From NCBI GenBank assembly GCA_000708835.1, contig DF236960.1, positions 214,982 through 278,981 on the forward strand: a DNA stretch of 64,000 nucleotides. Reading direction: 5' to 3'. How positions within the stretch are numbered: position 1 is the stretch's first letter; each line of letters begins with the position of its first letter. Of the stretch, positions 5,800 through 53,000 are shown piece by piece. The stretch is from Klebsormidium nitens (taxonomy: Eukaryota; Plantae; Klebsormidiophyceae). Both the position numbers and the translations under genes were made by a program. Under the pieces are notes generated by a model that worked only from the letters and a program-made list of their open reading frames with translations, had not been told where the DNA came from and ran no database searches.

Positions 5800-6049
5800 T
5801 AGTACGGTATATAGGAGCTGCCGAGGATTCAGCGTCGAACCGGGCACAAAGATGCTGGACTACCCGGCCAAAGATTATGCTGAAAGCTTATATGCTACAA
5901 CTTATACGTGCACGGTAAATTAAGGCCTTGGAGGAAACACTAGACTCAGAGCCTAGGGTACGTCAATGCGCAGCTTCACAATACCATTGCATGGTACCGT
6001 ACGGTATGTTGGTATCAGACATATGGCAGGCAGGTCAACGCCAAATTAC

Positions 6050-6726
6050 AAGATGACGTCAGACTCGCTGTGTTCCAAGAGTAACTTTAATTCAATGAAT
6101 GCTGGGATACACCCCGTTTTCGCGCTTGGCTGGTTGCAACACGTTGCAATGTATGTATATCAGGCCTTCAACTTCAAGCTTGTTTCTCAGAGGAATCACG
6201 CCCTGGAACACCCATCTCCTATGCTGACCAAGCGGGAAGCCAGCTCAGGAAGAAAGGTGGTTTTTCCAAACAACCGGCCCGCAGTCAGCCGTTCAAGAGT
6301 CGGGATGCAAACCCCTGGTTGCTTAACGTGTCCCATTCAAATGCAACGAGGATATCCTTTGCCGGGATTATCCTTTGCTTGTGATCAGCTCAGCTCTCAT
6401 AAGCATGGAGATCTTTGGATACGGCGGAAAAGTTGCCATGCAAACGCTCTCCAGCTGTAGACTGCATGCTGCACGACAGCTGTCACAGCCACCTCCGATC
6501 AGCTCATTGTTATGATGGCATCGCTCCTGCTCTCAGCTAAACGTCAGAACTATGCTGATCACTCACAAATTATGTGAGGGCTGCCCATTGGCTCATATAC
6601 CTATACAGCCCCCAAGCTGCAATCTGGCCTATAAAATCCACGCCCACACACCTTCATTCCCTAAAACTTCAAATCGTTCCAGAACAAACTTCAAAGCTCA
6701 GAGTCCACCTTCTCTCAGCAGCCGCC
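6050..6726 (+). promoter_or_regulatory. Conserved promoter of paralog 1 with TATA box
   Basis: TATAAAA at 6630-6636, 97 nt before the ATG. Region aligns block-wise with 13075-13790 and 18050-18718. TGACGTCA at 6054-6061. Confidence 0.65.
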
Positions 6727-9700
6727 ATGGCTTCCGCTGCGCGCCTCTCCCTCCTCTTCCTTGTTTCCGCTGCGGTCCTTTCCGGCTCAGCCGCGCAGCA
6801 GGTCAATGTTCCGGTGACGGTGCAGTGCCTGAACGTGCTGGAGAACAACCAGATCCTCAACATCCCTGGTGCCAATGTGGGCGTCGTCCAGGTCATCGCG
6901 GCAGCTCTCGGTGGCGCCGGCCAGGCCCCAAGCGCGCTCTTCTTCAACAGTAAGTCCCTAGCTCATTCTCCTGCAGGCTCAAGGCCTGTGCTTTTCTTGC
7001 ATTTGTTCCTTCGCTTATACCTTTTTCTGAGTCTGTCTGCTGGGGTCTCTATATTGATGTTTGTGGCTGGCCGCGAGAAAGCACTCCATGACCTGCCTCT
7101 AAAGAGATTCGTTGTGACGGCTCAGCAGCCAGATGAGCTGGGTTTCAGTAGGGAGAGGCAGTGGACAACGCGTTCCAGATTCTGCATTGCCTGCTCTTGC
7201 ATAATCTTCTCAGCAGCTGAGATCTTTGAGCTTCTTCCTGTGAACTTCACAATAAGGGAGATCTCCTTCCTGAGCTGACTTACTCAATGCCGGTTTCTCT
7301 TTTAAAATGGCTTTTTGAGGCAAACAGACTAGCTCTTTGATGGTTGCGGGGTCGTCTCTAGGTTAGAGGATTGAGACACGTGAGAATCTGGATCGCCGCT
7401 TGAAGCCTGCAAGCAGACATTTGACTCGAGGAAACAAAGGTCAAGCTGGGTTCTTAATTTGACATTGAATGCTTTGCGCGTCGTTAATTCTGTTCAGCAT
7501 GTGTCCTGTTGCGAGCTGAAGTCACGGCTCAAGAGCAATCTGCATAGGCTCCTCGTTGTGCAGGACTCACCTTGATGGTTCGGCTCACGTCGCGTGCAGA
7601 TAGTTTGATCCTGCACTCCAAGGCAATCCGAAGCAACAATTTGACATGTTTCTGGCCCTCTCCTGCAGGCAGCAGCAGCACCAACAACTGCACCAACAAC
7701 CAGAACTTCAACAGCAACTCCACGTGCAGCTCCGCCATTGGCCCCGTTAACCTGGGTGTTCTAGGCCAGGGCACTCTCACCCCCTGCTACAACGGGGCGT
7801 TCGCAGGGTCAAGTAGGGCCAAAATCGTGTCAGCATATTTGCAGAAAAATACTCGATACGAGAATAGCCGCCGTTTCATCGTTTCTTGGTCAAATCGACT
7901 TCCGTTTTTTGCATTGAGTACGCAACTCGTACCTTTAAAATGTACAACCCTCACTTTCGCCAAAAGTGACGAGTGCCCGGTAGTTAGAAATAGTGCCCGG
8001 TACATCAACGATTTCGAAAGGGCGCCCCACGGAAGTCGGCCTTGGTCCAACTTTCGGAAGCCGACACTTGGGCACAGGTTAGGCCTTGGGAAAGTCTAGT
8101 GCACCACATTCCTACTTCCGGAAAATCCGCGCAGATTTGACCCCGGCAGGGTATTTAAGGTATTAATAAATACAGAAAATATAAATAAAATAAACATATA
8201 TCCTCCCGGGGCCGCATCCGATGTGAATTTTGAAAAGTAGGAACGCAGTGCACAAGAGGTACCCTAGGTGGGCTCAGTGCCCGAAAATCACCTCAAAAAA
8301 GTTGGGCCGGGTCCGACTTCCGTGGGGCGCCCTTTTCAATATCTGCATGTACCGGCCACTTTTACCACCGACCGGTTGGCAGGCGGAAGTGAAAATTTCT
8401 ACCGGTATGTTGCAATGTGCTAGCGATGGGGTACCGGTAGCAAAAATCAGAAGTCAATTTGGCCACGATTTGAGTAAATGACGAGATCAAACGTCAAAAT
8501 GCCGAAAAGCTGACAGTGCTGACATGACGGCGGGTTGTACTTGGAGCGTACATGTGTACTTTTGGGTCCGTCCGGGTGTACTTTTAGAAAGTACCGAAAT
8601 GTACCAACCTTCCGAAAGGTCCTAGGATCGATTCCCACCATCGACCATTGAAGTTCCATTTTTTTGGCATTATTTTGCAATTGTTTTAAAGAGTGCCAGG
8701 ATTGGCCCCACCTGATCCTGCGAACGCCCAACGAGCCTACCGCGGGCGGACGCAAGCTGCTGCAGCAGATCAACGTTCCCGTCACCGTCCAGTGCCTGAA
8801 CCTGCTGGAGAACAACCAGATCCTCAACATCCCCGGACTAAATGTGGGCGTTATCCAGCTTATCTTGTCGGCTCTCGGCGGTGCTGGCCAGGCCCCAACC
8901 GCGCTCTTCTACAACAGTGAGTCATAAGTGTCGCACTTTGAAAAGTTCCGACTGATGATTTCTCAATCTGCATCTAGTGATCTGATGCTTTGATCCTTGT
9001 TCCTTTCAAGTACTCTCACGCTCTGTTGATGAGCAGTGAAGGATCCAGTGAATCAAACTGAAGTAAAAATCGAGGGCAGAGGGATTGTTTGTACAATCTG
9101 CAAGCTAGTTCGATTGTGATCTACAAAACCCGAAAATTATCGTGAGTTCTGAGCAAAAAGGAAAGTAGCCTGTTCTGAAAGGCGGGTCGTATTGCTCTTA
9201 CGGTTGTGTACGTGTCAGTACTTGACGAAAACTATTTGAGACTGATGGTCGGGTACATAGGGCAGACGACTGATAACAGAAGCACCTTACACCCCACGTG
9301 GAGTTTTCATAATACTTGGCGTTTTCAAAACACTTGGCGCCTCTCCTTCCGTCGAGCAAACGTGTCGTCCCAATGCGAACTGTTTCATTCACTTTTATTT
9401 TACCTTTGTCGCCAAACCCATGGCGCATATTTACCACTTCATTATTGCGTCTCCGCAGCCGGCAGCAGCACCAACAACTGCGTCAACAACCAGACCTTCA
9501 ACAGCAACTCCACGTGCAGCTCCGCAATTGGCCCAATCAATGCTGGCATTTTGGTCAGGGCACTCTCATCCCCTGCTACAACACCCCCGCCACCCCCGCC
9601 CCCACCGCCGGCGGCCGCAAGCTGCTGCAGCAAGTTAACGTGCCGGTTACCGCCCAGTGCGTTAACCTGCTGGACAACTCCCAGGTCGCCACTGACATCC

Positions 9701-11165
9701 CCAACGCGGTCGTCCAAGTCATCGGAGTGATTGCCGCAGTAGCCGGCGGAGGTGGCCAGACCCCATCTGCCATCTTCTACAACAGTGAGTCGCACCCGAC
9801 AGTTGACATGCACTTGTTCGGATACTGCTTGGATGCCTCAAGAAACTGGTTAGATACGTTCAGAGTGTAAGTCGATACGTCTTTTGTCGTCAGCAAGGAC
9901 TCTTCCTGAGATTTTTCTGGAAGCGAAGCAATGGAGGTCCTCGCTCTACTAGCAACCTCGAACCTCAACGCACCCCTTCGCGCTCGCTCCTTTCCGTTTA
10001 CCATCTCGAATGTCAGATTCAAGCCGAGCCTTGCTAAATTTCGCGTGCCCAAAACCCCGTTTTCTTTCGAGCTTGTAACTCGGTCTTTCCATTCTGACCG
10101 TCATCTTTATCTTCGAACCACTCTCCGTAATCTGAGTTCGTAGGATCTTGGGACCAGACTCTCCGCCCACAAAGTACAACAGGTTAACCGCCAACCTACC
10201 TTTCTTCTCGACCTTGACGCTTCATTTCCCCCCTTGCAGCCGGCACGAGCACCAACAACTGCAAGAACCTGCAGGAGTTCAACTCCAACAGCACCTGCAG
10301 CTCCGGGGTTGGCCCTGTGAACGCTGGCGTGCTCGGCCAGGGAACTTTTATCACGGGCTACCCCACCCCCCCCGCCGGCGGCCGCAAGCTGCTCCAGCAG
10401 ATCAACGTCCCTGTTACCGTTCAGTGCGTGAACTTGCTCAACAACAACCAGATCCTCAACCTCGCAAACCTGAACGTGGGCGTCATCCAGCTCATCCTGT
10501 CCGTGCTCGGCGGAGGAGGCCAGACCCCGAGCGCCGTCTTCTTCAACAGTGAGTCGCGAAGTTTTGCTGAATGATCGTCAGATCGAATAAGGAACCCGAG
10601 ATGTGTGCCAGCCGTCAAGATTCTTCTGATCGAAGATTCCGTGATGCCACGTATTCTTCATCCTTGCACTGCCGTCTTTCGACGTTGGCTTTTCAAAAGG
10701 TCCCCGGTACTCGACTCTTGTCATCTTCTAGCCTTTCGTCAGCCTCAAGTTTGCATGTTGTCCCATAGTTGCTAGACAAGTAGTACCAATGTTCACCACG
10801 CTTGGATTGATTTGTCTCTGCAACATCTACTTGGCGCCTACTCGGATTTTGCAGCGCGCGCTTAGAAGAGAATTTTGCGAAGCCGCCGCTCATCCTTGAA
10901 TCGTCCTGCAACGCTGCCTTCGTTTCCATCTCCGTGACGACATGGAAGGAGTGTGAAACACTTGTCAGTCTAGTTGCCGTTGCTGTATTACAAACCGTAT
11001 GTTATCTGACCCATGTTTCACCTACTCCTTGCAGGCGGCACCTCCACCAACAACTGCCAGAACAACCAGGAATTCACCAGCACCAGCAACTGCTCCTCCG
11101 CGATCGGACCCGTCAACGCTGGTGTTCTCGGCCAGGGCACTCTCATCCCTTGCTACGGATCTTAG
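6727..11165 (+). pseudogene. Paralog 1 of the secreted RKLL-linked Cys-module precursor (4 modules); disrupted
   Basis: Exons 6727-6949, 7669-8916 (interrupted by TIR element 7795-8729 plus TSD), 9459-9784, 10240-10548, 11035-11165(TAG); all introns phase 1 GT..AG. Signal peptide MASAARLSLLFLVSAAVLSGSAA then QQVNVPVTVQC. 1-bp deletion in exon 3 near 9553 (ATTTTGGTCAG vs ATTTTGGGTCAG in copy 2) shifts the frame. Exon 4 has ITGY where copy 3 has ITCY. Confidence 0.85.
7795..8729. mobile_element. 935-bp non-autonomous TIR DNA transposon inserted in exon 2 of paralog 1
   Basis: 28-bp TIRs 7795-7822 and 8702-8729 (GGGCGTTCGCAGG..., 25/28 match). 4-bp TSD AACG at 7791-7794 and 8730-8733. Removing the element plus one TSD restores TAC AAC GAG CCT (YNEP) and the 309-nt exon length of the paralogs. 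Internal perfect 23-bp inverted repeat 8017-8039/8313-8335. No transposase ORF. Confidence 0.9.
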
Positions 11166-13074
11166 GTTATTCCCTCGTCTGGGTAGATTGGGAAGAGAAC
11201 CTCGCCGGGAAGGAGTCGAAGTGGGAATTGCTCAGAACAAGTGGGAGAGAACAGTGGAGTGCTGCCAATTGCTTGCAGATACTTTTAAGGACGTGTAATA
11301 AAAGACGGGAGTGTCTGGCAGGCTTCGTGAAAGTATGTGAACATGCTCCCTCGTAGATGCGCGCGCGTAGATTTTGATAGAACGTTGTGACCATGAATTT
11401 AGTCAGGGAGATAACCTGATTGTCCAATTCTGAACTCTAGTGCAGGGTCCGTTTTTGTCGCCAACAACCAGCGCCACTAGACTAGGGGAAGGTGAAAAGA
11501 CGGTAAAGCACACATGTAACCTTACAAAATCAGTGGAATAAACCTGCGATGCTTTCGCATCTTATTATACCAGCGTTCAGAACTTTGTTCTCGTAAAAAC
11601 TTTCAAATGTTATAAACTGATCGACCTTATCTCAATGTCTAACAATCCCTGTGACGTAAAATATCTACCGTGAATTATGAATTACTACGTTAAATACTAA
11701 TCGAATGAAGTGAAGAACCCAATCAAATTATGCTGCATACTCGATCGTCAGTGCCACATGATCAACAAATTAGGTAAACTACAGACTTTATGATCCTTTG
11801 CAAGTCGCTTACGACCGCCTGCAATTCATTTTCTGCTTCAAGTGTGCAATATTTTCCTCAAATCTACCTGTCCAACTTATCCACTACTTTCACTAGTGGG
11901 AATGATTCCGCATGTGCAACCTTGTTGGACTTAATCAGCTCAATCTACTACACAAGAGCGGCCTGATTACCACATAAGCTGTACCGCACATACTAGTACT
12001 GCAAGCGAGCAGATTGAGACCTGTAAAACTTGCCCTCTTCAGATAAAGTACGAAATTCCAGCCCTGTTCCAGTACTTAGACTCTATCATGCCAATTATTT
12101 TGCCATTGAATGTCTGAGGCTAGGAGCCCATCACTTAAGTGAAGTGGCAGCGGGATAGCTAGTTATTCTGATACGTGGGGGGGGCTGAGGCTTGGTACCC
12201 AGCTCGATCGACGAGGGGGGGGAGCTAGCGATCTTAAAGGCTTTTAATTGGCGGGCTGCTAAGCGGCCTCGGCTGCATCTCACAGCTGAAACCGGGCGAA
12301 ATCCCCCTTATTCTGACCGGCGGTTTGTAGCTTTATGAGGCCTTCAAAGCTTCAGGCCGGCAATGTTCGACTAGTGGTTGAGCTCCCCCCGGGGGGGTGC
12401 TTGTGGCCCTCTAAGAAAGTGGCATGTAGAATACCTAAGGCTGGTGCCACTTCAAAATGACGGTACCCTTTGATACCGCACATGAGCTACCAGGTGTACA
12501 GCTGTACAGAGCCTGCTCTGTGCATGTATGATAGTGCCGGACATCCCCGGACAGGCTCCGGACTCCACAACCCACTGAGGTCGTCGGCCGGGCGCTAGTC
12601 TCACACGCCGCGACTCGGATAAAGACTGCCCTTGTCCTTTTTGTGGTGCATGATGCACCGGCGGGCGGCTGGTTGCGCTACGTAAGGGACCGGCTTGAAA
12701 TTGAAGGTAGTGCATTCTACCAATGCAGTCGACTGAGGACTCAGTGGTGAAAAGTTCCGTACAACCAGCGATCACTCCGTCACCATAGGTTATGGCCCCA
12801 CCGCCGCCAGAATTTGCGGCATGCATTCCAGCTGTAAAATGCGATGGGTCGGAAGTGCTGGAACCCTGGACGACGTCTGCTGGATGACAACCATGCTTGA
12901 TGGTACTTTACTGACCGGGGTATAAGTCCCGGTCGCAACATCCCCACCAAGCCAAAGCCTGAGACCACTGCAGGTTGGAATTTGGAGATCTTCGGCCGAG
13001 GAGTCTTTTCTGACCGGGCTACCCGACCAAAGCTTATGCTTAAAGTAATTCAAAATGAGTACAATAAGCGGATA

Positions 13075-13790
13075 TTGACATCAGAAGCCTCTGCCGCCTA
13101 GACAGAAGTAACTTTCAATGATTGCTGGGATCCTCGTTTTCGCGCTTGGCTGGTTTCCACACGTTGCAATACTGCCCTACACGTAGCCTAAACCTTTGTT
13201 CCCCCGGGAAACTACCAGAGATACGCCCATCTCGTATGGGCTTTTAAGCAGCTCAGTTTCCTAGTAGTATATATACCTAATACCACATTGCTGGAAACGA
13301 ATGAAGCGGAAAGCCAGCTCTGGAAGAAAGGTGGTTTTCCGATCAACCCGCAGGCAGCCTGCATTTGGGAATCAGGATGCAAACCCCTGGTTGCTACGTG
13401 TCTCATGCACATGCAATGAGGATATTCTGCGCCTGGGATACAATATCCTTCGCCTGTGTTCAGCTCAGCTCTCATAAGCATGAAGATCCTAGGATACGGC
13501 GCCACTCCCTGCAATGCGGAAGAGCTGCCACGCAAACGCTGCCAGAGAAATGACAGCTGTCACAGGTCATTCCCTGCTCTATCTCCGCCTCCCAGCTGGA
13601 TTGAAGCTATTTATCAGAGCATTGCTCCTGCTCTCAGCTGAAACGATGCTGATCACTCATATACCTATACAGCTCCGCAACCTGCCATCTGACCTATAAA
13701 GCCGCGCTCACATTCCTCAGAATCTCGACACTTCCAAACTCACAAATCCTGCTCCAAAGACCAGGGCGCAAATTCCTCCCAGCAGCCGCC
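13075..13790 (+). promoter_or_regulatory. Conserved promoter of paralog 2 with TATA box
   Basis: TATAAA at 13695-13700, 96 nt before the ATG. Homologous blocks such as CGTTTTCGCGCTTG and GGATGCAAACCCC are shared with the other two copies. Confidence 0.65.
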
Positions 13791-16482
13791 ATGGCTTCCG
13801 CTGCGCGCCTCTCCCTCCTCTTCTTTGTTTCCGCTGTAATCCTTTCCGGCGCTGCCGCGCAGCAGGTCAATGTTCCGGTGACGGTGCAGTGCCTGAACGT
13901 GCTGGAGAACAACCAGATCCTCAACGTTCCCGGAGCCAATGTGGGCGTCATCCAGGTCATCGCGGCGGCTCTTGGCGGCGCCGGCCAGGCCCCGTCCGCG
14001 CTGTTCTTCAACAGTGAGTGCCTTGTTTTTATTCTGATGGGTTCGAGGCTGATGTTTCTTTCACACGCCTGCGCTCTTCTAGCTGCTGTCTCTTCACATG
14101 CCTGCGCTTCTCTAGCTTAGAAACTAAGTTTTTTAGTATGCGCGGGCGACCCTTAACTGCACTCTTGCTCAGAGCTAGTACCTCAGGGTTGGTTGTGGCG
14201 CTTTGCTGAGCTTGCTGTCGAGTGAGCTGGACTTCAGTAGCAAGGAGCAGGGGACAATGCATTCTATATTGTGCACTGCCTGCTTATGCATAACCTGCGG
14301 AGCATTCTAACTTGTGGTTGGTTGACTGGGGCGCTTAGATGGTTGGAAATGTGGGTCCTTCTTTCTTCTTAGAGCAGGTTTGCAGACTAGCACTTTGATG
14401 ATTGCCGGCTCATCTTTTGGAATAGAGGCTTAGTCGGGTTGATAAATAGAGTGTGGAATGACATGCCAGTCCTCTTGACCAGAGAGCGTGAGGCCAAGCT
14501 GGGTTCTATATCTTTTACCGGGTACTTTGCTCGTTGATGCTCGAGAGTCCTACCCTGAGCTCAGCTGATATCACAAAATGGTTTGAGGAAGTTTCTCGCT
14601 GTGCGGGGCTCTCCATGAACGAGGTATTCAAGTGGTTCAACTCACATAGAATGCACCAGACTGCCTGTCCCAGCAGTCCTATCTGCTCTTCTCATTTAAC
14701 AACAAATCGTTGCTAATGCATTCCTTACCGCACTGTCCCGCAGGCGGCAGCAGCACCAACAACTGCACCAACAACCAGAACTTCAACAGCAACTCCACGT
14801 GCAGCTCCGCCATTGGCCCCGTCAACCTGGGCGTTCTCGGCCAGGGCACTCTCACCCCCTGCTACACCGAGCCCCCCGCAGGCGGCCGCAAGCTGCTGCA
14901 GCAGATCAACGTCCCGGTTACGGTTCAGTGCTTGAACCTGCTGGAGAACAACCAGATTCTCAACATCCCCGGACTCAATGTGGGCGTCATCCAGGTCATT
15001 GCGGCGGCTCTCGGCGGTGCCGGCCAGGCCCCAACTGCACTCTTCTTCAACAGTGAGCTGCACTACATCGTTTTCTGAAAGAGATTTGTCAGATGGTTCC
15101 CTAATTGCATTTGTTTTATGCTCTATGCACTGAGCTGATTAGGCTTTGAGTGAGCTGGACTTCAGTACAGCTAATCTGGGGAGAGGAACTCAATTGTACA
15201 GTCTGCAAACTCGATCACTTGCTATCTGTCAGCCCGTGAAAATGTTGAAAGCTTACCGGAAGGGAAAATAGCAAACATCTGAGAGGTAGTTCAATCTGCT
15301 TAGTCCGGATTGTTAGCACTCGACGAACTTGTAAGAATGTAGGTCCACCGGGCAGACAAATGTGCACTTCTACCCTTGAAACGTACCTTGGGAAGCTTAC
15401 AAAACGGTAACCTGAAGCTTCGAAGGTTTGGCGACTACTAAAACAAGCAAGTAAGCTGGTTATTGATGGCGTGATCCCAACTTCCGTTGTAACGTTTTAC
15501 TCCGGACTTCTCCATTTTACTTCTGTACTCTCCTTAGTGTTCAAAATCATGGAGCGTATACTAACCTAGCTTCTCATTCGCGCGCCCCCTCCGCAGGCGG
15601 CAGCAGCACCAACAACTGCGTCAACAACCAGACCTTCAACAGCAACTCCACGTGCAGCTCCGCAATTGGCCCAATCAATGCTGGCATTTTGGGTCAGGGC
15701 ACTCTCATCCCCTGCTACAACACCCCCGCCACCCCCGCCCCCACCGCCGGCGGCCGCAAGTTGCTGCAGCAAGTGAACGTGCCGGTTACCGCCCAGTGCG
15801 TTAACCTGCTGGACAACTCCCAGGTTGCCAACATCCCCAACGCGGTCGTCCAAGTGATCGGAGTGATTGCCGCAGTGGCCGGCGGAGGCGGTCAGACCCC
15901 GTCTGCCATCTTCTACAACAGTGAGCGACACCCGACAGCTGATACTTGTTCGAACACTGCGCGGATGTCTCAAGAAACTGATTTGACACATTCGAAGTTA
16001 AAGTTAATACGTCTTTTGTCGTCAGCAAGGGTTCTCTTTGAAATCACTTTGGGATGTGGAAGCGGAGCAGTGTAGATATGCACGCGGAGACCGATTGGTG
16101 CATGTTTGGTCGTCAGCAATCATTGTGCCCGCGTCATCCAGATGTAAAAAGGGAACCTGACTTTTATTTGGCTGTGCATACAAATGTTCGTTCAGTGACA
16201 ATGTCGCTTGCGAGAATTTCGCAATTTGTCCGTAAGCCAAGAGCTGACGTCGACACCCGTCCAAGTTCTAAGTCGCCATCCTTACGGTTGTGAACCGGCT
16301 GAGTGTACACTCTTTAAGGTCCTCTAAACCAACTCCATTCCTTCTTTTCAGGCGGCACCTCCACCAACAACTGCCAGAACAACCAAGAGTTCACCAGCAC
16401 CAGCAACTGCTCTTCCGCCATTGGACCCGTCAACGCTGGTGTTCTCGGCCAGGGAACTCTGATCCCGTGCTACGGGTCTTAG
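13791..16482 (+). CDS. Paralog 2, intact: secreted precursor of three ~92-aa 4-Cys modules joined by Pro-rich GGRKLL linkers (328 aa)
   Basis: Exons 13791-14013, 14744-15052, 15597-15920, 16352-16482(TAG) total 987 nt, open throughout, phase-1 introns. 23-aa signal peptide. Modules begin QQ(V/I)NVPVT(V/A)QC and end GQGTL(T/I)PCY. Confidence 0.9.
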
Positions 16483-18049
16483 AACATTTCCGCGTCTGTG
16501 GACAACTGAAAAGTCAACTACGCCGGGCAATACTCATAAGCGGGGAGTTGTGTAAACAGGGGGGAGACAAGAGAGAAAGTCGGTAAGAATTGCAGGCAGA
16601 TACTTCCGAGTATTTGGAAGAAAGCATGATGTAGCGCTTGGCAAGCTTTGTGAAATAATTGGTCTGAAGCTAGTGAACATACTCGCCCGGAAAGCGCGCG
16701 CGTAGATCCTGATAAAACGTAATAGTAACGTGCGAACAAGGATTTCTTTAGGGAAAGAACATGCTCTGTGCTATTTTGGAACACTAGTGCAGAATCCGTT
16801 TTTGTAACCAGCGCCATCAAAGTAGGGAAAGGTGGAAAACGGTTGAATTGACTCGTTCCCAAAAAGTACCAATGCAATAAAGCTGCAACACTCCTCGTGG
16901 AGTGTCAACCCTATCCAAATCTTCTGTACCCACAATCTTGACGATAATATGTCACCAATACACTGATTCCTCGTTTTCAATGCCGAGGTACGCACTAAAA
17001 TGTTGAGATTGTTTCCAACCTGCCAAAATTGTTGCTGCTGCACCAGCAATGCAGAAAACAGAACATGTCATAGCCAACTTGATCAGCACATGTTTACATG
17101 CTACGTGGATAAACGTGGAGCAACCAGCTCCCTCTTCACAAACGTATCACAAATTCTGTGAATATAATGCATAACCATCACCAACTGCTGAACAAGCGTT
17201 GATCATGTTCACCTTAAAGTCACCTCGATATCTTTCTTTGGAGAAATATCTGACAAATTCAATGCTTTCCAATAATCACCGCACGTCACTGTATGATCAA
17301 ACAGGCTTGAAAGGTTTTCAGCGGTCGTAACTTCACTACTGCCCACCACAATTAGCAACAAATCTTGTTGCACAATTTGCAGTTGATTAATTGACTCTAC
17401 CCGTCTCTTCAAGTTCACGGGTTACTAACAAGCTAAGTCCTAATGCCTGCACTCGGCTCGGTCTGCAGAAACAAGTGAACTGCTCAGATGTTCATTACTG
17501 CAAAGTTCAGAATGCTGCTGCAGGCCAGCTAGGGTCTGAAAACTTTCGAGAACCCGCTCTTTTTCCAGGTCTTGACAGAAGTCCATGTAATTAGAGTTCA
17601 GGCTTTGAACTTTATTCTGATACATACTACAGTGCCGGGCAATCACAGACTCCAGAAACGGGGCCGCGCGCGCTGGCTACTACTACTTACTAGTCCCACA
17701 TGACGCGAAAAAAAGACTGCTGATCTGTGGTGCATGCATCATCGACCGCCGGTTTCCGGCGGGCCGAATGCCGGGCTGCTGGTCGCGTCAAACAAGGGAC
17801 CGGCATTGGGCTAGCATACCGGTCGACAGAGTTCCGTACAGTCCGCGACTCCAACTCAATAAGCTATCACACCACGGCCGCGCCGAATTTCCGGCATGCA
17901 TCCCAGCTGCACATATTTAAGCTGGGTGGGAACAGACTGCAACTCGGGATGAAAAGCCGCCGCCCCGACTGCAGTTCAATAGGTAATGTAGGCTTGCCGC
18001 TTCAGCCTTATATAAGCCTTGAGGCAGCTAGATATCAACCCCATGTTAT

Positions 18050-18718
18050 GAATGACGTCAGACTCGGTGTGCTCCAGAAGTAACTTTCAATGAATTCTGG
18101 GATACCCCGTTTTCGCGCTTGCCTGGTCTCAACACGTAGCAACATGATTGCCCTATACGTAAGGCCCTTGTTAGAAAGTAGGGACGCCCTGCAATGCCCA
18201 TCTCCTATGGGTCTTCTGAGCTCACCTTGCCTAGCTATAGCATCATGTGTAGGACACCAACATTGTGAAAGCCAGGTCACGATCAGGAAGGAAGGCGGTT
18301 TCCCAAACAACCCCGCAGGCAGCCGTTCAGGATTCAGGATGCAAACCCCCGGTTGCTACGTGTCCCATGCACATGCAATGGGATATCCTCTGCCAATGCT
18401 ATTTCAGCTCAGCTGACCTCATAAGCATGAAGATTTGTTCCGGCGCAGGTCCCTGCAATCCGGAAGAGCTGCGTACATGACAGCTGTCGCAGCTCGCTGC
18501 TTGCTCTATCTCCGCCCTCCGTTGAGTTAGAGCTCAGTATGATGCCATTGCTCCTGCTCTCAGCTTTTGAGAGCTGAACCGATGCTGATCATCATTCTTA
18601 TACCTATACAGCCCCCCGAGCAATCTGGCCTATAAAACCCGCGCCCACATTCTCCAGGCACCTCAAACTTCCAAAAGAAGCTCCTCAGCTCAAAGCCCAC
18701 AGCTCCTCAGCAGCCGGC
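18050..18718 (+). promoter_or_regulatory. Conserved promoter of paralog 3 with TATA box
   Basis: TATAAAA at 18631-18637. TGACGTCA at 18053-18060. Homologous to the other two upstream regions. Confidence 0.65.
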
Positions 18719-21700
18719 ATGGCTTCCGCTGCGCGCCTCTCCCTCCTCTGCCTTGTTTCCGCTGCGGTCCTCTCCGGCGTTGCTGCGCAGCAGGTCAATG
18801 TTCCGGTGACGGTGCAGTGCCTAAACGTGCTGGAGAACAACCAGATCCTCAACATCCCTGGAGCCAATTGGGCGTAATCCAGGTCATTGCGGCGGCACTC
18901 GGCGGCGCTGGCCAGGCCCCGTCTGCACTGTTTTTCAACAGTAAGTTCCTCAATCTTCCACTGAAGGGCTTTGCCTGATGCTTCTCCGCACAGCTCATTC
19001 TTCCGTTGGCGCTGTCCTCTGAACCTGTGTACTAAGTTCTGTTTGTTGATGTTGAAGGATGATACTTCATTGCACTCATTTGGGTTCCTCAGAATGCATG
19101 GAGCTTCTGTTGAGCTTGAGCGGTCAAGTGAGCTGGATTGGTAGCGAGGGCCAGGAGGGAATGCATTCTACAATGTGCACTGCCTGCCTATTTGATAACC
19201 TGCTCAGCACCCAAGACGTCTTCTGAGCTATTTCTCCACATACAGTGGTCTCGAGTGAAAGCGGATCCCTTTCTAAGCTCTGGGTGTAGGCTTGCTTGCC
19301 GCCAAGTGAATGGGGCGCTTGAATGGTACAGGTTTTTGATTCAGAATGCGCCTCCTTAGACCGGTCTTCCAGATGAGCAGTTTGATGATTGCGAGTGATC
19401 CTGTAGAGCAGAGAATCTAGTTGAATGGAAAAGGCGGAGTTGGAGCGCACAGAACACGATCTGATAGCAGACTAAAGCGTGTGAGGCCAAGCTGGGTTCT
19501 ACGTTCTACACCAGAGAACCTGCTCATTAGTATTCGCGCTCAGCTGTATCCTTCCGCAAGCCGAAGTGATGTTTCAGATTGAAATTGTGGAGGCTTTTCG
19601 CTTCGCAAGTCTCTCCTTAAACTACGCACCTCATATAATCAGCTCACATCACACAAAGACTACCTCTAATCCAGCAGTCATGGCTGTTCCCCTAATTTGG
19701 CGGAGAACAAAATTTTTGCAAGCCTATACTAAGTCCCCCCTTCTGGCGCTTCCCCGCAGGCGGCAGCAGCACCAACAACTGCACCAACAACCAGAACTTC
19801 AACAGCAACTCCACGTGCAGCTCTGCCATTGGCCCGATTAACCTGGGCGTTCTTGGCCAGGGCACTCTCACCCCCTGCTACAACCAGCCGCCCGCAGGCG
19901 GTCGCAAGCTGCTGCAGCAGATTAATGTCCCGGTTACAGTTCAGTGCCTGAACCTGCTGGAGAACAACCAGATTCTCAATATCCCCGGGCTCAACGTGGG
20001 CGTCATCCAGCTCATTCTGGCGGCGCTTGGCGGCGCCGGCCAGGCCCCCACCGCGCTTTTCTACAACAGTGAGTCGCTGGCTTTTCCCGTGGGGAGTTTT
20101 GTCCGGTGTATGCTCGTTCACTCAGTTCAGCTTTCTAATTCTCGAGCTTTATCCCCAGGAAATGATACTTTTGATTCTTGCTCTTTGGGCAACACTTGTC
20201 CGCGGTCATTCGTGTCCCCAATCAGTCCTCATCAAGCGTGTTGCTTCTCTGTGCTGAATGAGAATTGGGCTTGTCAGTGTTACACTGCACTGGCAGGGGG
20301 ATCGCATCCGTGACTTTCCAAGCTTGCCCAAACTTCCACTTGCTAAACCGCGAAATTGTGGACGCTCACCGTAGGTGGAAGTAGCTTCTTTCTGAGTCGC
20401 GGGTAGAGCCTCGCTTGTTGTTGGCGCTGGTACCACTTGAAACCTTTCCAAGAGTGGTAGTCTAGAGGCCAGACAAACGTATCGGTAATTCTGGGAATCG
20501 AGGACTAGATGCAGAAGGCGGAGATTCGGGAGTTTAGAAGTGCAAGCGACTACTACCGTTACCTTTCAACGTGAACTGGGCCGTTTCCTCGACTACGACA
20601 TCTTGATCACCGATATGATTATTCGGCACCTCTCCGTCCGTCAATCTGAAATGACAGACCCCTCAGCGTGTACTAACCCACAGTGGGTTAATTACCCAAT
20701 CCTCACCGTCCCCCTCCGCCACAGTTAGTCTCCAAGACCACATTCTAACCTACTCCTTACCATGCCCCCTCCACAGCCGGCAGCAGCACCAACAACTGCG
20801 TCAACAACCAGACCTTCAACAGCAACTCCAGGTGCAGCTCCGCGATTGGCCCGATCAATGCTGGCATTTTGGGCCAGGGCACTCTCATCCCCTGCTACAA
20901 CACCCCTGCCACCCCCGCCCCCACCGCCGCCGGCCGCAAGCTGCTGCAGCAGGTTAACGTGCCGGTTACCGCCCAGTGCGTTAACCTGCTGGACAACTCC
21001 CAGATTGCTAACATCCCCATGGCGGTCGTCCAAGTCATCGAAGTGATTGCCGCAGTCGCCGGCGGAGGCGGCCAGACCCCGTCTGCCATCTTCTACAACA
21101 GTAAGCAGCCCGAGCTTTGTGTCCCCATTTCCGCCATTCTAATTCAAAAGGCTACTCGTGCTTCTGCAATCAAACGTGCTCGTAGACAAGTGCGGGAGGG
21201 ACGGTCTCCTGCTTTTCCGCATGTTGCGCCAAAGAGTTTCGTCTTCGTACTTCAGACGGAAGAAATTTGCTCATACGCGTACGACTTCTGGGCCCTTGCA
21301 TCAATTGATCGAACAGTTTCGCAAGCGCCGCCCTCTTAGTACCACTTACATCACATCTAGCACGAAAGCATCGATGACTCCGGTCTTGATTCCATCCCCT
21401 CAACTCAGATGTTTTTCGAGAGCCCAAGTTCCGAGTATTCCTTGACTAGGTGATTCCATCCCGAGAACTTTCCTCCCTGGCCGCTCGCAGCCGGCAGCAG
21501 CTTCGGTGTTCTCCCCAACCCCCCAATCCAAACGATCCCTTAAATTGGCCGATTGTGATCTGCCTGAGCCCAACATCCCTCAATCCAGAAGCCTGAACCC
21601 TTTTGGAGCCCAGAAGCCTGAACCCTTTTGGAGCCCAACTTAGAAACCAGAAACCCCTGAAACCTTTCTCCCCGCCCCCTCGCAGCCGGCACCAGCACCA

Positions 21701-22871
21701 ACAACTGCCAGAACATCCAGACCTTCAACACCAGCGGCTACTGCAGCTCCGCGGTGGGCCCCGTGAACGCTGGCGTGCTCGGCCAGGGGTCTCTGATCAC
21801 GTGCTACCCTCCCCCCCCCGGCGGCCGCAAACTGCTCCAGCAGATTAACATTCCCATCACCGTCCAGTGCGTTAACCTGCTTAACAACAACCAGATCGGC
21901 AACATCCCCAATCTCAACGTGGGCGTCATCCAGCTAATCTTGTCCGCGCTCGGTGCCGGAGGCCAGGACCCCACGGCCGTCTTCTTCAACAGCCAGCCAA
22001 GCGGCAGCTGTAAGCCTCCGAATTCTCAAACCATTTAGCTTGAAGAAAACTCTGGTCTCCTTACAAAGTGTCGTTTTGGATTGGAAGTCTTTGCGCGTCC
22101 GTTTGTTCTCGCCCACACACCGACGGCCGTCTTCTTCAACAGCCAGCCGAGCAGCAGCTGTAAGTCTCCAGAAGATCGATCTGTCTCATATGAGAAGTAT
22201 AGACTGTACTTTTTGTCATGGTGTCTTTTTGGGTTTTGTACACCAAGGCCTTGTCGCATGTCTTGTCTCAAATGATTGTTCGGATGGCCAGCCAAGCGGC
22301 AGCTGTAAGCCTCTCAAATACTGACCCGTTTGCGCGAAGCAGATATGGTCGCCAGAACGTCTGTCGAATTCGTTTCACTTTGTCCGTCTATTTTTGGGAA
22401 CTTTGTCACACAAACGGTATGCTGCCGACGATGCTTGATAAACGACGCGATCTCGGTCGAAGTTCCTGACTTGTTCTATTATCCACATTCTTGAAGCTCT
22501 TTCGCAGTATACTTGTCTTCTTCTATCTTAGTTTTGGCGGCGCGGCTCTGTTTGTTGGCATTCCTGCCCAGTACCTTTCAACAACTTTCTGTGAAGCTAT
22601 CTTCAGCTAGCCTGCTACTCACGACAGGTTTAGGATCGGTTTCGGACCGTACATAATCAGGAATCTGAAATTCCAATCGGTAATTACCTTTTAAAGGCAG
22701 TCCTTGAAAGACGGATGGATTCACACCTTCTTCGTCCACACAGGCGGCACTTCCACCAACCACTGCGAGAACAACCAGGAGTTCAACAACTACAGCAAGT
22801 GCTCGTCCGCAGTCGGGCCCGTGAGCGCCAGCGTTCTTGGCCAGGGAACTCTCATTGCCTGCTACGGTTAA
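18719..22871 (+). pseudogene. Paralog 3 of the RKLL-linked precursor (4 modules); exon-1 frameshift, or a sequencing error
   Basis: Exons 18719-18940 (222 nt vs 223 in the other copies; GCCAATTGGGCGTAA gives a stop at 18875-18877), 19760-20068, 20777-21100, 21686-22009 (shifted donor), 22744-22871(TAA). Downstream exons are open and conserved. Confidence 0.75.
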
Positions 22872-50077: not shown

Positions 50078-53000
50078 CTAAGCCGGCCGGAAATAGGTGC
50101 TGATCGTCATAATTCCTTCTCTACTGACCCACTTCGACTTGAGAAGCTCTTCGACGGTCAGCCCATCAAAGGCATCCCCCCTGCCCCACCCTTCGTCTAT
50201 TTCTTTGAACGTTTGCGCATGCATTGGATCCACTTGGACTCTCCACCCCGACGGCCAAACTTTGACCCCCAGATCGAACCGCATCTCCCTCTCCCAATCC
50301 GGTTCGTCCACGTGGATCGTGCTCGTCGGATTCAAAAACACCCCAACCTTTTCGTCCTCGCCCTCGGGGTCCATGACTTGCACCCGCAACTGCCAGAACG
50401 TACCCCGGACATCTAGACCGACGTCAGAGTACACGTCGGTGTTTTCTCTCAGTTGCGACGCTAGGAAAGGAAACTCCAGAAAGTTGTGGAACGAGGAGAC
50501 CCTCTCCCGTTCCCGGAACTGAGCTTTTCCGCCGGATTCCGCCGCTGCGCGCGCCTTCTCTTCGTCCGTCATCGACCGGAACCACACTGCGTCCATTACA
50601 ATCTCCTTCGAGAGTTGCATTAAATCCAGACCGATCATTGCCCGGAGCTTCTCCCCGCCTATCATCCGATAGCGTATGTGCTTCGACAGGTCTGACATCA
50701 CGTGCGCTTTTCTTTCCGTACCTCCGGGCATGTGGCTAACCCATCTCAAAACGCCGTCGAACATCTCAGCCTCACTCGGCGCCTCTAGTAGTTCCGAATG
50801 GAGCAGAAAGGCGACCGTGGCCCGTGACAGGGCCAGGAATTCGTCGCCCTTCCACGTTGCTGCCACGTCCTGGAAGTGAGTCAACAGGATGCACTTAACC
50901 CGCATCAAAAACTGGCTAACCCCTTCGTGCCTAACCAGAAAAGCGTGCTCTTCCAACATATTCAAAGCGCCGTCGCAGAAGGACACGGTCAAGTCGGACA
51001 ATTTGAGAGAAACCAGCGAGGCGGCGACAGCTGTCACAAAGGAAGAACACTGGTACTTGTCGCCAATGAGGAGTTGCTTGAGGAGAACGTCGCTGTTGGG
51101 GACGGGTTCCGGCGGAAGTGCTCCGGAGTACATGAAGCGGAGCATCGTCACGATTGCAGCCTCGTCTGCACAGGAAGAAGTTTGCAAGGTGAGGAGTCGA
51201 GCAAGAAGAAGCTTTGGTTCTGTGCAGTTGTTGTCACTTTGTGTTTCCGATAGTTGGTGCAAAGGAGCTCCCCCGAAGGGTACTCTCAAGCCTCGCGCGA
51301 ACGAAGATTTGTAACGCATAAGAAGCCTGTCCTGAGAATGATAAAGTGGCAACTTGTTTCAATCATCTGCTTCTGAACAGCCGCCAATTATCCGATCCGG
51401 TGCAATCCACTTATTTTCAGAGCCTTCTGCGCACGCGTCCCTTTTATTATGAACCACGCTTTCGTGGCTCAACATGTTGTGGCTCGGTTTCCCGAACGCC
51501 AGACTTCCAAGAAGAGAAGACTGTCAAGCCAGAAGCGCCAAGTGCAAAATTGATTCCGTAGCCCCTGTTCCGAAAACCAATAGGCGTGGCCAGATTCTGA
51601 GGGATAAATCTAGTATTGGAATGCCTGCGTACCGTCCTTGACGATCCTGAGCACAATCACTGGCTTTTGTCACCAGACATACACTATCGACAATCCAATC
51701 TCGAGAACCTGGAACCCACAATTCCGAGCGACAATTCGCGAACCACAAAAAGCGACTACAAACCCTGAAATCTCAGAGGACGGACTTCGAAGATTGCAGG
51801 CAGACCGCCACTTGCAATTTTGAGCCCAATGGTGGCCTTACTCAACCCGTACTTCCACATCCAGAAACCTCATCCTAAGGGTCCAAATCTCAGAGTACTA
51901 GGTGAATTGTAACCGTAAGCTGGGACTCACAGAAGTGCGACTCTGAAACGAGATCTTGGAGAAGAAAGGCGTACCATCCTTGGCTATTTTCAAAGTTAAT
52001 GGTGGGCTTGTCACGCAGAATTCGCCCACCTCAACCGGATGCCGAGGCTTTTCAAAATAGAAATTTAAACTGGGCACAAATAACGGAAGAGGAAAGTCGG
52101 TCTAACAGCAGGCGTACCATCCTTGGCAATCTTGAGCACGATCGTGGGTTTGTCCCGCCCAGCCTCGCGCATCCCGCTTAGGAGCATCGTACGGAAGAAG
52201 TCGCTACGGGCCGCCAGAATGAGGCTGTTCACTTTGATGTCACGACCGGGCGTCGTCGCACTTCTGGTCGACCCCTCTGCACAAAGTTGGGGTTCAAAGC
52301 CCGTCAGCATCGGTTTGGGGATAACCCAGTCAGCATAGTTTCTTAGAAACCTCGGCAGCCTCGGTTGGGTGACTCTATAAGCACTGATTTCGCCTTTCCA
52401 TCTCATCGAGGGGTTCTTGATGTCGTCAAGCTCTGGTCTGGTTTCTGGTGGACCCCTTTTTAAAGAATGAAAAAGATTGTGCCGATCATAAACACCACTT
52501 TCCTCTTATTGGTTGTGCTCTGAGTTCAGCTGTTGCACGCTGAAGCGACCACGCAGACTCGGAATGACAGTGCTCCTCCTGGGAAGCCAGAGAACCTGAT
52601 CAGGAAAGGGGTTGAACATCGAAAAGCCGCCCATCTACGTCGAATCCCCACTCTCAAAAGGCCCAGTTATGCTTACCAATCACAGACCCGGATAACAACG
52701 TGGGTTATAGCTTGTGAACCTGGTTATGAAGCCGGCCAAAGTCCACCGCAGGTTAGGGGGTAGTGAAGACTGAGTGATGAATCCTGGTTAGAAAGATGGT
52801 TATAGTAACCCACCTGACTCGCGGTCGTCTCTGCCGCCCTCCAGCTTCCGCCGTGAGCGGCGCGTTTCGTACACCTGGCGGCCGGAACCTTCTGGCTCGC
52901 CAGCGTCTGTGGCAGAACAGAAGGGGCACACCATCAGCTTCAATGTTGTTGAATGGTGGTGTGACTTGTTGGTTTTGGATCAGTTTCTAGATAGGCTCCA

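Follow-up and report, generated by a model that had tools for sequence, protein, structure and literature searches.

Tandem paralogous genes of the streptophyte alga Klebsormidium nitens encode a repeat protein whose precursors, to judge from their sequences, have a probability of roughly 55% of being lineage-restricted secreted proteins that an S1P/SKI-1-type subtilase cuts into extracellular units starting with Gln. The predicted precursors consist of a signal peptide and 2-5 modules of 92 residues, connected by Pro/Thr/Ala/Gly linkers that end in R-K-[L/M]-[L/Q]. The subtilase would act in the secretory pathway and cut past the fourth residue of this motif. Each module would thus be freed as a protein of ~10 kDa that presumably contains two disulfides and invariably begins with an NH2-terminal Gln, which could cyclise to pyroglutamate. 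The freed units would function extracellularly and would probably make up an abundant structural or surface part of the wall.

Structure of the gene cluster

Scaffold KFL_000110 carries four paralogous genes, three of which lie in the window (the whole 64,000-nucleotide stretch of DNA that was analysed): KFL_000110220, KFL_000110230 and KFL_000110240, here copies 1, 2 and 3. All three are annotated publicly as "hypothetical," and they contain 11 modules (4 + 3 + 4). The span for which an earlier note on this DNA had described a repeat protein starts precisely at the copy 1 ATG (6727) and ends with the copy 3 stop codon (22869-22871), and its observation is borne out by the three tandem paralogues, among which copy 2 is intact. 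The upstream five-module gene P0009 is likewise intact. Precursors of the family contain two modules (P0012, P0013), three (P0011, P0002, P0003), four (P0001, P0010) or five (P0009). The region upstream of copy 2 is also conserved, with blastn aligning 13103-13700 with 18075-18636 (69%) and 13304-13501 with 6230-6426 (82%).

Table 1. Coordinates of the paralogues and associated features in the window.
Feature	Position	Strand	Description
Copy 1 (KFL_000110220; public model P0010, 407 aa)	6727..11165	+	Signal peptide and 4 modules, degenerate
Terminal-inverted-repeat element, non-autonomous, 935 bp	7794..8729	.	Inserted in copy 1 exon 2, within the stretch coding for the linker
Promoter and 5' UTR region of copy 2	13103..13790	+	Conserved, common to copies 1 and 3 (blastn)
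Copy 2 (KFL_000110230; public model P0011, 328 aa)	13791-16482	+	4 exons, intact
Copy 2 exon 1	13791-14013	+	Signal peptide (residues 1-23), module 1 N-half
Copy 2 exon 2	14744-15052	+	Module 1 C-half, linker TEPPAGG, RKLL (14887-14898), module 2 N-half
Copy 2 exon 3	15597-15920	+	Module 2 C-half, linker NTPATPAPTAGG, RKLL (15755-15766), module 3 N-half
Copy 2 exon 4	16352-16482	+	Module 3 C-half, ending ..PCYGS, then stop codon
Copy 3 (KFL_000110240; public model P0001, 392 aa)	18719..22871	+	Signal peptide and 4 modules, broken exon 1
Copy 3 exons after exon 1	19760-20068, 20777-21100, 21686-22009, 22744-22871	+	

The predicted product of copy 2 is identical to the public model P0011. The signal peptide, assigned by eye, has an n-region with R6, a hydrophobic core at residues 7-19 and an A-x-A motif before Q24. 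It is followed by three modules of 92 residues (24-115, 127-218 and 235-326), each of which begins with QQ directly after either AAA at the end of the signal peptide or RKLL at the end of a linker (TEPPAGG-RKLL and NTPATPAPTAGG-RKLL). The protein contains 12 Cys residues, four per module, and its only basic residues are R6, R123, K124, R231 and K232. The earlier description of copy 2 as a signal peptide plus three such modules, with QQ starts, RKLL linkers, four Cys per module and no Lys or Arg other than Arg6 and two RK pairs, thus matched the gene in every detail. All copy 2 introns are of the GT..AG type, and a phase-1 intron splits each module at the identical position. Since each internal exon consequently comprises a C-half, a linker and an N-half, unequal crossing-over in this intron would change the number of modules.

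Copy 1 retains motifs for all module halves (N-half motifs at 6796, 8763, 9628 and 10395; C-half motifs at 7677, 9467, 10248 and 11043) and carries three lesions. The first is a transposon in exon 2, inserted between PCYN and EPTAGGRKLL, with inverted ends of 26 nt (7795-7820 and 8704-8729; 0 expected by chance) and an internal palindrome (7977-8375). The second is a frameshift in GILGQGTL within the exon at ~9459-9784, where the in-frame stretch 9461-9783 has a length modulo 3 of 2, and the third is the replacement of Cys by Gly in the third module (GTFITGY). Exon 1 of copy 3 reads ..PGANWA-stop, reflecting the loss of one base and a stop at ~18870, and the public model P0001 splices around it. 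In the last module of copy 3, a shifted donor adds QPSGSC and with it a fifth Cys. With only copy 2 of the three intact in the window, a high dosage from this portion of the cluster is evidently not needed.

Expression and purifying selection

The genes are real and expressed. The earlier note had named lack of a transcript as a case against its proposal; contigs derived from metatranscriptome RNA instead cover the four exons of copy 2 but not its introns and cross the predicted splice junctions. They start at ~13776, upstream of the copy 2 ATG, and 7 of the 42 contigs on this gene are at least 99% alike. Exon-1-type sequence occurs in the contigs at a joint (14013>14745) and at a loose end (14744); exon 2 is covered and both neighbouring introns are not; a loose end past 15920 continues into next-exon-type sequence, and another ahead of 16353 has exon-3-type sequence. 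Three small contig sets labelled as the same species yielded no match to copy 2, a result that does not prove absence. For other members of the family, JGI contigs with lengths of 1.0-1.5 kb contained full-length ORFs free of introns (P0002, P0003, P0012 and P0013), a transcript was found from a K. subtile culture (P0014), and introns were found at matching positions in a genomic contig (L003).

The exons are under purifying selection. Omega for exons of copy 2 versus copy 3 was 0.096 and 0.167, and almost nothing of the introns of these copies aligns by blastn, save two short stretches in intron 1. The transposon, frameshifts, stop, lost Cys and shifted splice donor of copies 1 and 3 might otherwise be read as signs of a decaying lineage-specific repeat family that is transcribed but has little present function and is heading to pseudogenisation. 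We regard this as highly improbable, in that omega between copies is 0.10-0.17, with exons conserved and most intron sequence unalignable, that copy 2 and P0009 are intact, and that intact two- and three-module orthologues are expressed in other samples.

Composition and distribution of the modules

In an alignment of 22 modules, four Cys per module and the first Gln (Q1, 22 of 22) are invariant, with the N-half of the module being hydrophobic and the C-half rich in Asn, Ser and Thr. Three properties previously put forward for the modules proved to be narrower than proposed. N-glycosylation sequons are present in P0011 (NCT81, NST91, NQT188, NST194 and NCS304) but are not conserved across the family, with none in 6 of the 22 modules, all six from the two most distant relatives. 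A near-zero charge characterises K. nitens and close kin, whereas modules of the distant relatives contain 3-6 acidic and 0-2 basic residues. The proposed amphipathic beta-strand, with strict alternation of hydrophobic and polar residues, holds for the first ~11 residues (beta moment of 3.2, reached in 8 of 1000 column shuffles), but the rest of the module is arranged in blocks, hydrophobic at about residues 26-34 and then polar and rich in Asn, Ser and Thr at about 50-66.

The repeat modules had no match in Pfam or the PDB, and searching 1.84 billion proteins with a profile returned 8 clusters, whose named sources were two Klebsormidium species and no others. These results uphold the earlier view that the modules belong to no described family, and they support a lineage-restricted, presumably secreted repeat protein with no described relatives. 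The module thus represents a protein family without a Pfam model or a structural template. The AlphaFold modelling suggested earlier was run with AlphaFold2 but gave no confident fold (pLDDT of 46.8 and 36.0), with no autonomous folded module seen in the model at 46.8, a low value that may be due to nothing more than the 22-row, low-diversity alignment.

Putative processing at RKLL

All 27 sites listed, at which a module starts after a pro-piece or linker, have the form R-K-[L/M]-[L/Q] followed by Gln, and the linkers ahead of this motif differ in length and sequence. P0003 departs from the common pattern in one RKLQ site and in three modules that begin with QL rather than QQ. Outside K. nitens, all seven first modules are preceded by a signal peptide, a pro-piece of 3-12 residues without conservation, and RKLL or RKML. 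In the four K. nitens paralogues, the end of the signal peptide (AAA, VAA or SAA) directly adjoins the same Gln, with no RKLL before module 1. The same NH2-terminal Gln would therefore be reached by two routes, signal peptidase and RKLL, a pattern that fits a cut after RKLL and not after RK. These sequences favour cleavage after RKLL. A unit released in this manner would keep a C-terminal tail of linker plus RKLL unless trimmed, so that the "uniform, almost uncharged" proteins of the earlier note would require an extra step.

RKLL is a documented processing motif of S1P/SKI-1-type proteases and of pectin methylesterases (10.1101/2022.07.28.501549; PMC4926184). RKLL, RKML and RKLQ all conform to the S1P/SKI-1 substrate pattern of R-x-(hydrophobic)-L or R-x-L-x in a protein predicted to enter the secretory pathway. 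K. nitens itself has a candidate protease, GAQ86362.1, which is listed as a Peptidases_S8_SKI-1_like subtilase (PMC6713707, supplementary file 2). The precursors also show the features of repeat polyproteins: a signal peptide, nearly identical tandem units, a conserved short basic motif and a varying number of units.

Nevertheless, RKLLQ could belong to the repeat as a structural element and not be a cutting site. The protein would then be an uncleaved multi-domain secreted wall glycoprotein resembling beads on a string, in which each repeat opens with RKLLQQ as its first strand and the linkers are possibly O-glycosylated spacers. Algal wall proteins often feature Cys-containing tandem repeats linked by Pro-rich segments, the repeat can equally be drawn as RKLLQQ...PCY plus linker, and the first repeat of the relatives also begins with RKLL, as expected for part of a domain. 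We consider this arrangement rather unlikely. In none of the four K. nitens paralogues does RKLL precede module 1, yet it precedes every later module, a distribution that is hard to explain for part of a fold and easy if signal peptidase replaces the cut. In addition, apart from the R and K of the motif, the mature protein of K. nitens contains no basic residues, and the pro-pieces ahead of the first RKLL are variable in length and not conserved.

Comparison with known systems

The repeats of silaffin precursors end in RRIL or RRNL, an RXL motif directly follows the signal peptide, and the precursors are cut into single units (PMC4557024). Diatom silaffins and silacidins resemble the Klebsormidium proteins as algal secreted precursors with a signal peptide, an early RXL-type motif and repeat units ending in R-[R/K]-x-L. 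The sequences are unrelated, however. Silaffin units are short, rich in Lys and Ser, and heavily modified for silica formation, whereas the Klebsormidium units have 92 residues, four Cys, an abundance of Asn, Gln and Val, and almost no charge, and occur in a streptophyte without silica. Land-plant substrates of S1P/SBT6.1, namely the pro-regions of group-2 pectin methylesterases (PMEs; RKLL or RRLL) and RALF23 (RRIL), share the identical RKLL, passage through the secretory pathway and an enzyme class that K. nitens also encodes. They differ in that one cut removes a pro-domain, compared with the putative 2-5 cuts that would yield equal units, and no PME, PMEI or RALF domain was found in the repeat modules with Pfam.

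Nematode polyprotein allergens and the Nicotiana alata proteinase-inhibitor precursor are secreted precursors that also contain tandem, near-identical units of ~10-15 kDa that are cut at a short basic motif, but their folds, functions and cleavage motifs (RxKR, furin-type) are different and there is no homology. Rep1 of Ustilago maydis follows the logic proposed here, in that a single secreted precursor yields numerous small wall peptides that resemble one another and render surfaces hydrophobic; it differs in being fungal, in cleavage at KR by Kex2 and in its peptides of 34-55 residues, again with no homology.

The resemblance to Streptomyces chaplins and fungal hydrophobins, which are likewise small, secreted and of low charge, failed every test run. 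The module has a short V-x-V-x-V strand beside a Cys (QQVNVPVTVQC), which the earlier note had likened to a chaplin motif. The Pfam search that had been proposed, an hmmscan of Pfam-A with all 22 modules and the exon translations at E <= 10, detected neither chaplin (PF03777, ChpA-C, formerly DUF320) nor hydrophobin (PF01185, PF06766). The module contains four Cys as opposed to two in chaplins and eight in hydrophobins. The actinobacterial chaplin domain has ~40-50 residues, the streptophyte module is twice as long, and its alternation is confined to just 11 residues.

Possible functions

Processed units need not form a coat. It is possible that the precursor is processed but that its units serve as an adhesive or matrix, lectin-like, ice- or desiccation-related surface, or defence protein. 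The evidence for processing applies equally to such roles, and the data show nothing that specifically indicates water repellency, with a GRAVY of just +0.2 to +0.36 and ~25% of residues being Asn or Gln; on the other hand, no family match singles out any one of these roles. Charge argues against a role as an antimicrobial: peptides of this kind are usually cationic when they derive from multi-copy precursors, but the units here are neutral to acidic.

Klebsormidium serves as a model of how algae moved onto land. Its surface is reported to bear a chemically unexplained superficial "hydro-repellent layer," or cuticle-like hydrophobic layer of lipid and glycoprotein (PMC4927632). A water-repellent coat or amyloid role for the units, for which the sequences show just a composition and one amphipathic strand, is speculation, and we think it doubtful, at long odds, that the ~10-kDa units capped with Gln or pyroglutamate are the protein part of this layer and an independently evolved streptophyte counterpart, by way of S1P-type processing, of hydrophobins, chaplins and repellents. 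If true, this reading would be relevant to the handling of air-water interfaces by early land-dwelling algae.

Should the cuts not occur, the family would be an orphan wall protein with repeats and nothing more. If processing at RKLL by an S1P-type subtilase does take place, the family would be a green-lineage example of an RxLL-type site used repeatedly to release equal units; we know of no other such case in this lineage, and to our knowledge RKLL in land plants serves only the removal of a single pro-domain. The cluster provides a concrete, expressed and lineage-specific candidate for an abundant extracellular protein of Klebsormidium.

Organization of the gene cluster

In the window, which is eukaryotic DNA with a G+C content of ~51%, scanning of all six frames for module motifs and searching for repeats revealed 11 split coding modules that form three tandem genes of four, three, and four modules (copies 1, 2, and 3: KFL_000110220, KFL_000110230, and KFL_000110240), publicly annotated as "hypothetical protein". 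A fourth paralogue with five modules, KFL_000110180 (P0009, 538 amino acids), shares the scaffold KFL_000110 (460,846 bp). The spliced product of copy 2 is identical to the public model P0011 (328 amino acids), and its features agreed with those described in the earlier note: three 92-residue modules (residues 24-115, 127-218, and 235-326), all starting with QQ, 12 Cys residues, sequons at NCT81, NST91, NQT188, NST194, and NCS304, and K or R limited to R6, R123-K124, and R231-K232. RKLL follows each of its two linkers, TEPPAGG and NTPATPAPTAGG.

Each module is interrupted by a phase-1 intron, located between ..FFN-S and G-SSTNNC.., so that each internal exon comprises a C-terminal half, linker, RKLL, and N-terminal half, and its duplication or loss can leave the reading frame intact. 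Such gain and loss accounts for the absence from copy 2 of the extra exon found in copies 1 and 3 as well as for relatives with two to five modules. The exons of copies 2 and 3 show 91.6-91.9% identity, whereas almost nothing of their introns was aligned by blastn save two short stretches of intron 1. For this pair, exon 2 had an omega (Nei-Gojobori) of 0.096 and exon 3 an omega of 0.167. Codon usage across the RKLLQQ sites was almost uniform and thus said nothing about selection that the exon-wide omega had not. Given that conservation among the paralogues (66-82% identity) extends to ~600 nt upstream and ~170 nt downstream, the duplication unit takes in the promoter and 3' end, and these flanks are candidates for a promoter and 3' UTR common to the family. 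Unrelated to the cluster, a separate ORF containing a BACK domain (PF07707, E = 2.2e-9) probably represents one exon of a gene of the BTB/Kelch type.

Positions of features in the window and in outside contigs
Feature	Position	Strand	Details
Module cluster, copies 1 to 3	6727-22871	+	11 split coding modules
Conserved upstream stretches	13103-13700, 18075-18636, 6035-6426
Conserved downstream stretches	11337-11504, 16673-16843
Copy 1, TIR element in exon 2, linker-coding part	7794-8729		935 bp; 26-nt terminal inverted repeats
Copy 1, internal palindrome of element	7977-8375
Copy 1, apparent one-base frameshift	exon at 9461-9783		real lesion or assembly error
Copy 1, extra exon	10242-10547	+
Copy 2, exons	13791-14013, 14744-15052, 15597-15920, 16352-16482	+	introns all GT..AG
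Copy 3, extra exon	21688-21990	+
Copy 3, 3' end of exon 4 and its re-copies	21970-22019, 22120-22169, ~22290-22315		one re-copy 92% identity, one partial
BACK-domain ORF	50078-51352	-	424 aa
Adjoining family genes, Logan contig (SRR23617307)	L007:1-2292
Most divergent relative (JGI sample 3300060284)	L005:971-2040

Lesions in copies 1 and 3

Exon 2 of copy 1 contains a non-autonomous DNA element with a long internal palindrome; the window has no second copy of this element. Copy 1 also carries an apparent frameshift and, in its third module, a replacement of Cys by Gly. In exon 1 of copy 3, an apparent loss of one base, either a real lesion or an assembly error, leads to a stop codon directly after ..PGANWA, and the public model P0001 splices round it. 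The last module of copy 3 has a shifted donor with QPSGSC inserted. The 3' end of exon 4 of this copy, together with the shifted donor (..FFNSQPSGSC followed by gtaag), is re-copied within the following intron, which represents local duplication at the site of the lost ancestral donor.

Expression and splicing

The cluster genes are real and expressed. Over positions 13500-16900, contigs from the public metatranscriptome X1 covered only the four exons of copy 2, with 7 of the 42 contigs aligned on the copy 2 region being at least 99% identical. The splice joint 14013>14745 was present, and loose ends at 14744, 15920, and 16353 run on into sequence of the neighbouring-exon type. Some contigs also showed joints between exons 1 and 3 (14013>15597) or between exons 2 and 4 (14964>16352). 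Such joints are most likely cross-joins made by the assembler between near-identical repeats or paralogues, with alternatively spliced, module-skipping transcripts being the less likely reading. Copy 2 had no match in three contig sets labelled with the species of the window, which are small, of uncertain type, and not proof of absence.

JGI contigs of 1.0-1.5 kb carry four full-length ORFs without introns, which encode three modules (P0002 and P0003) or two modules (P0012 and P0013) and read through the module midpoints, as does a transcript from a K. subtile culture (P0014). A genomic metagenome contig (L003) contains a two-module gene with introns at the matching places.

Distribution of the family

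A search of 1.84 billion cluster representatives with a HMMER profile built from six exon translations yielded eight proteins at E ≤ 0.001, every one of which had an E value of ≤ 1e-10. The named sources were only K. nitens and K. subtile, with the others derived from metagenome or run contigs. The earlier note recognised no described family in the modules, and the searches agreed: Pfam gave no family match for the exon translations and 22 modules (only Cnd1_N, E = 0.24, and DUF4342, E = 1.4, each for single members), a profile search of PDB sequences at E ≤ 10 gave zero matches, and a feature search of the ESM Atlas with one P0011 module and P0002 gave no usable match. A scan of metagenome contigs with the module profile returned only an already-known contig, and the identifiers KFL_000110180, 220, 230, and 240 and their kfl00011_ forms were not found in the papers searched, including supplements of two K. 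nitens RNA-seq papers. As judged from these sequence searches, the module represents an undescribed family, seemingly confined to Klebsormidium and close kin.

On contig L007, two family genes follow one another, with ~2 kb separating the end of the first (..GQGTLIPCYGS and stop) from the start of the second (MASAMRLSLL..), and the tandem layout is therefore retained in another strain or species. The most divergent relative, on contig L005, has a 12-residue pro-piece (WEVPRGFGWEP) ahead of RKLL and the module intron at the usual place; given a further intron directly past the last Cys of the module (..PCTSTG before gt), its architecture may differ downstream.

Precursor processing

Wherever a module comes after a pro-piece or linker (27 module starts), the motif R-K-[L/M]-[L/Q], with R and K invariant, stands directly before it, and Gln is residue 1 in 22 of 22 modules. 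The linkers ahead of the motif vary in length and sequence, and include PPPPGG, GAGGN, GAAGHK, GRAGN, and NTPENGG in addition to those of copy 2. Between the signal peptide and the first module, all seven relatives from outside K. nitens have a short pro-piece that is not conserved and that ends in RKLL or RKML (such as AADSRKLL, ADRKLL, KERKML, AESRKLL, or WEVPRGFGWEPRKLL). The four K. nitens paralogues have no pro-piece, and the end of the signal peptide (..SGAAA) adjoins the same Gln. These two routes to one N-terminus are as predicted by a cleavage site, and they place the predicted cut after the fourth residue of RKLL rather than behind the basic pair. We estimate a probability of roughly 55-60%, on the basis of sequence comparison, that the precursor is processed into single units. 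The main rival, that RKLLQ belongs to the repeat of an uncleaved, beads-on-a-string wall protein, is less likely, and the fact that K. nitens has lost the RKLL ahead of its first module speaks against it.

The predicted cut between RKLL and Q fits the way in which subtilases of the S1P/SKI-1 type cleave. RKLL has been named as a processing motif of Arabidopsis pro-pectin-methylesterases (10.1101/2022.07.28.501549) and, in the glycoprotein precursors of nairoviruses, as a motif of SKI-1/S1P (PMC4926184). SKI-1-like subtilases have been found throughout Archaeplastida, with K. nitens GAQ86362.1 being listed among them (PMC6713707 and its supplement). In layout, the protein most closely resembles the diatom silaffin precursor, which has RXL straight behind its signal peptide and in which each repeat unit ends in RRIL or RRNL, motifs that are missing from the mature peptides (PMC4557024).

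Processing at RKLL, as proposed in the earlier note, is consistent with the comparison across relatives, but the proposed uniform and uncharged units would require additional trimming, given that the linker and RKLL would otherwise stay as a C-terminal tail of the released unit. A pyroglutamate at the N-terminal Gln, which we infer entirely, would be plausible chemistry. Among the papers listed in our literature searches, none linked glutaminyl cyclase to Klebsormidium, and none was a Klebsormidium secretome or wall proteome.

Module properties and possible role

The N-terminal half of the module is hydrophobic (GRAVY of +0.54 to +0.68), and the C-terminal half is polar, rich in Asn, Ser, and Thr, and contains three of the four Cys residues; Asn and Gln together make up 18-27% of residues. 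The amphipathic alternating strand attributed to the four-Cys modules is present but limited to the first ~11 residues, and the sequons and near-zero charge of copy 2 are not conserved in distant relatives. The protein ends two residues past the last Cys and therefore has no C-terminal anchor signal. AlphaFold2 gave no confident model for one module (22-row alignment, pLDDT of 46.8) or for the three-module mature protein (9 rows, pLDDT of 36.0).

Membership in the chaplins, to which the modules had been likened, or in the hydrophobins fails in that none of the 22 modules matched the Pfam models of these families at E ≤ 10. The idea of a water-repellent coat has some footing, in that a "superficial hydro-repellent layer" has been described in Klebsormidium species, with the remark that "there is no chemical evidence" for it (PMC4927632); that released units serve such a coat nevertheless appears improbable. 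The original observation is confirmed and its interpretation partly supported. The modules constitute a new protein family in an arrangement of a known kind, in which a secreted precursor of tandem units carries a conserved basic motif of the processing type, and the lineage that holds this family is of interest for evolution.
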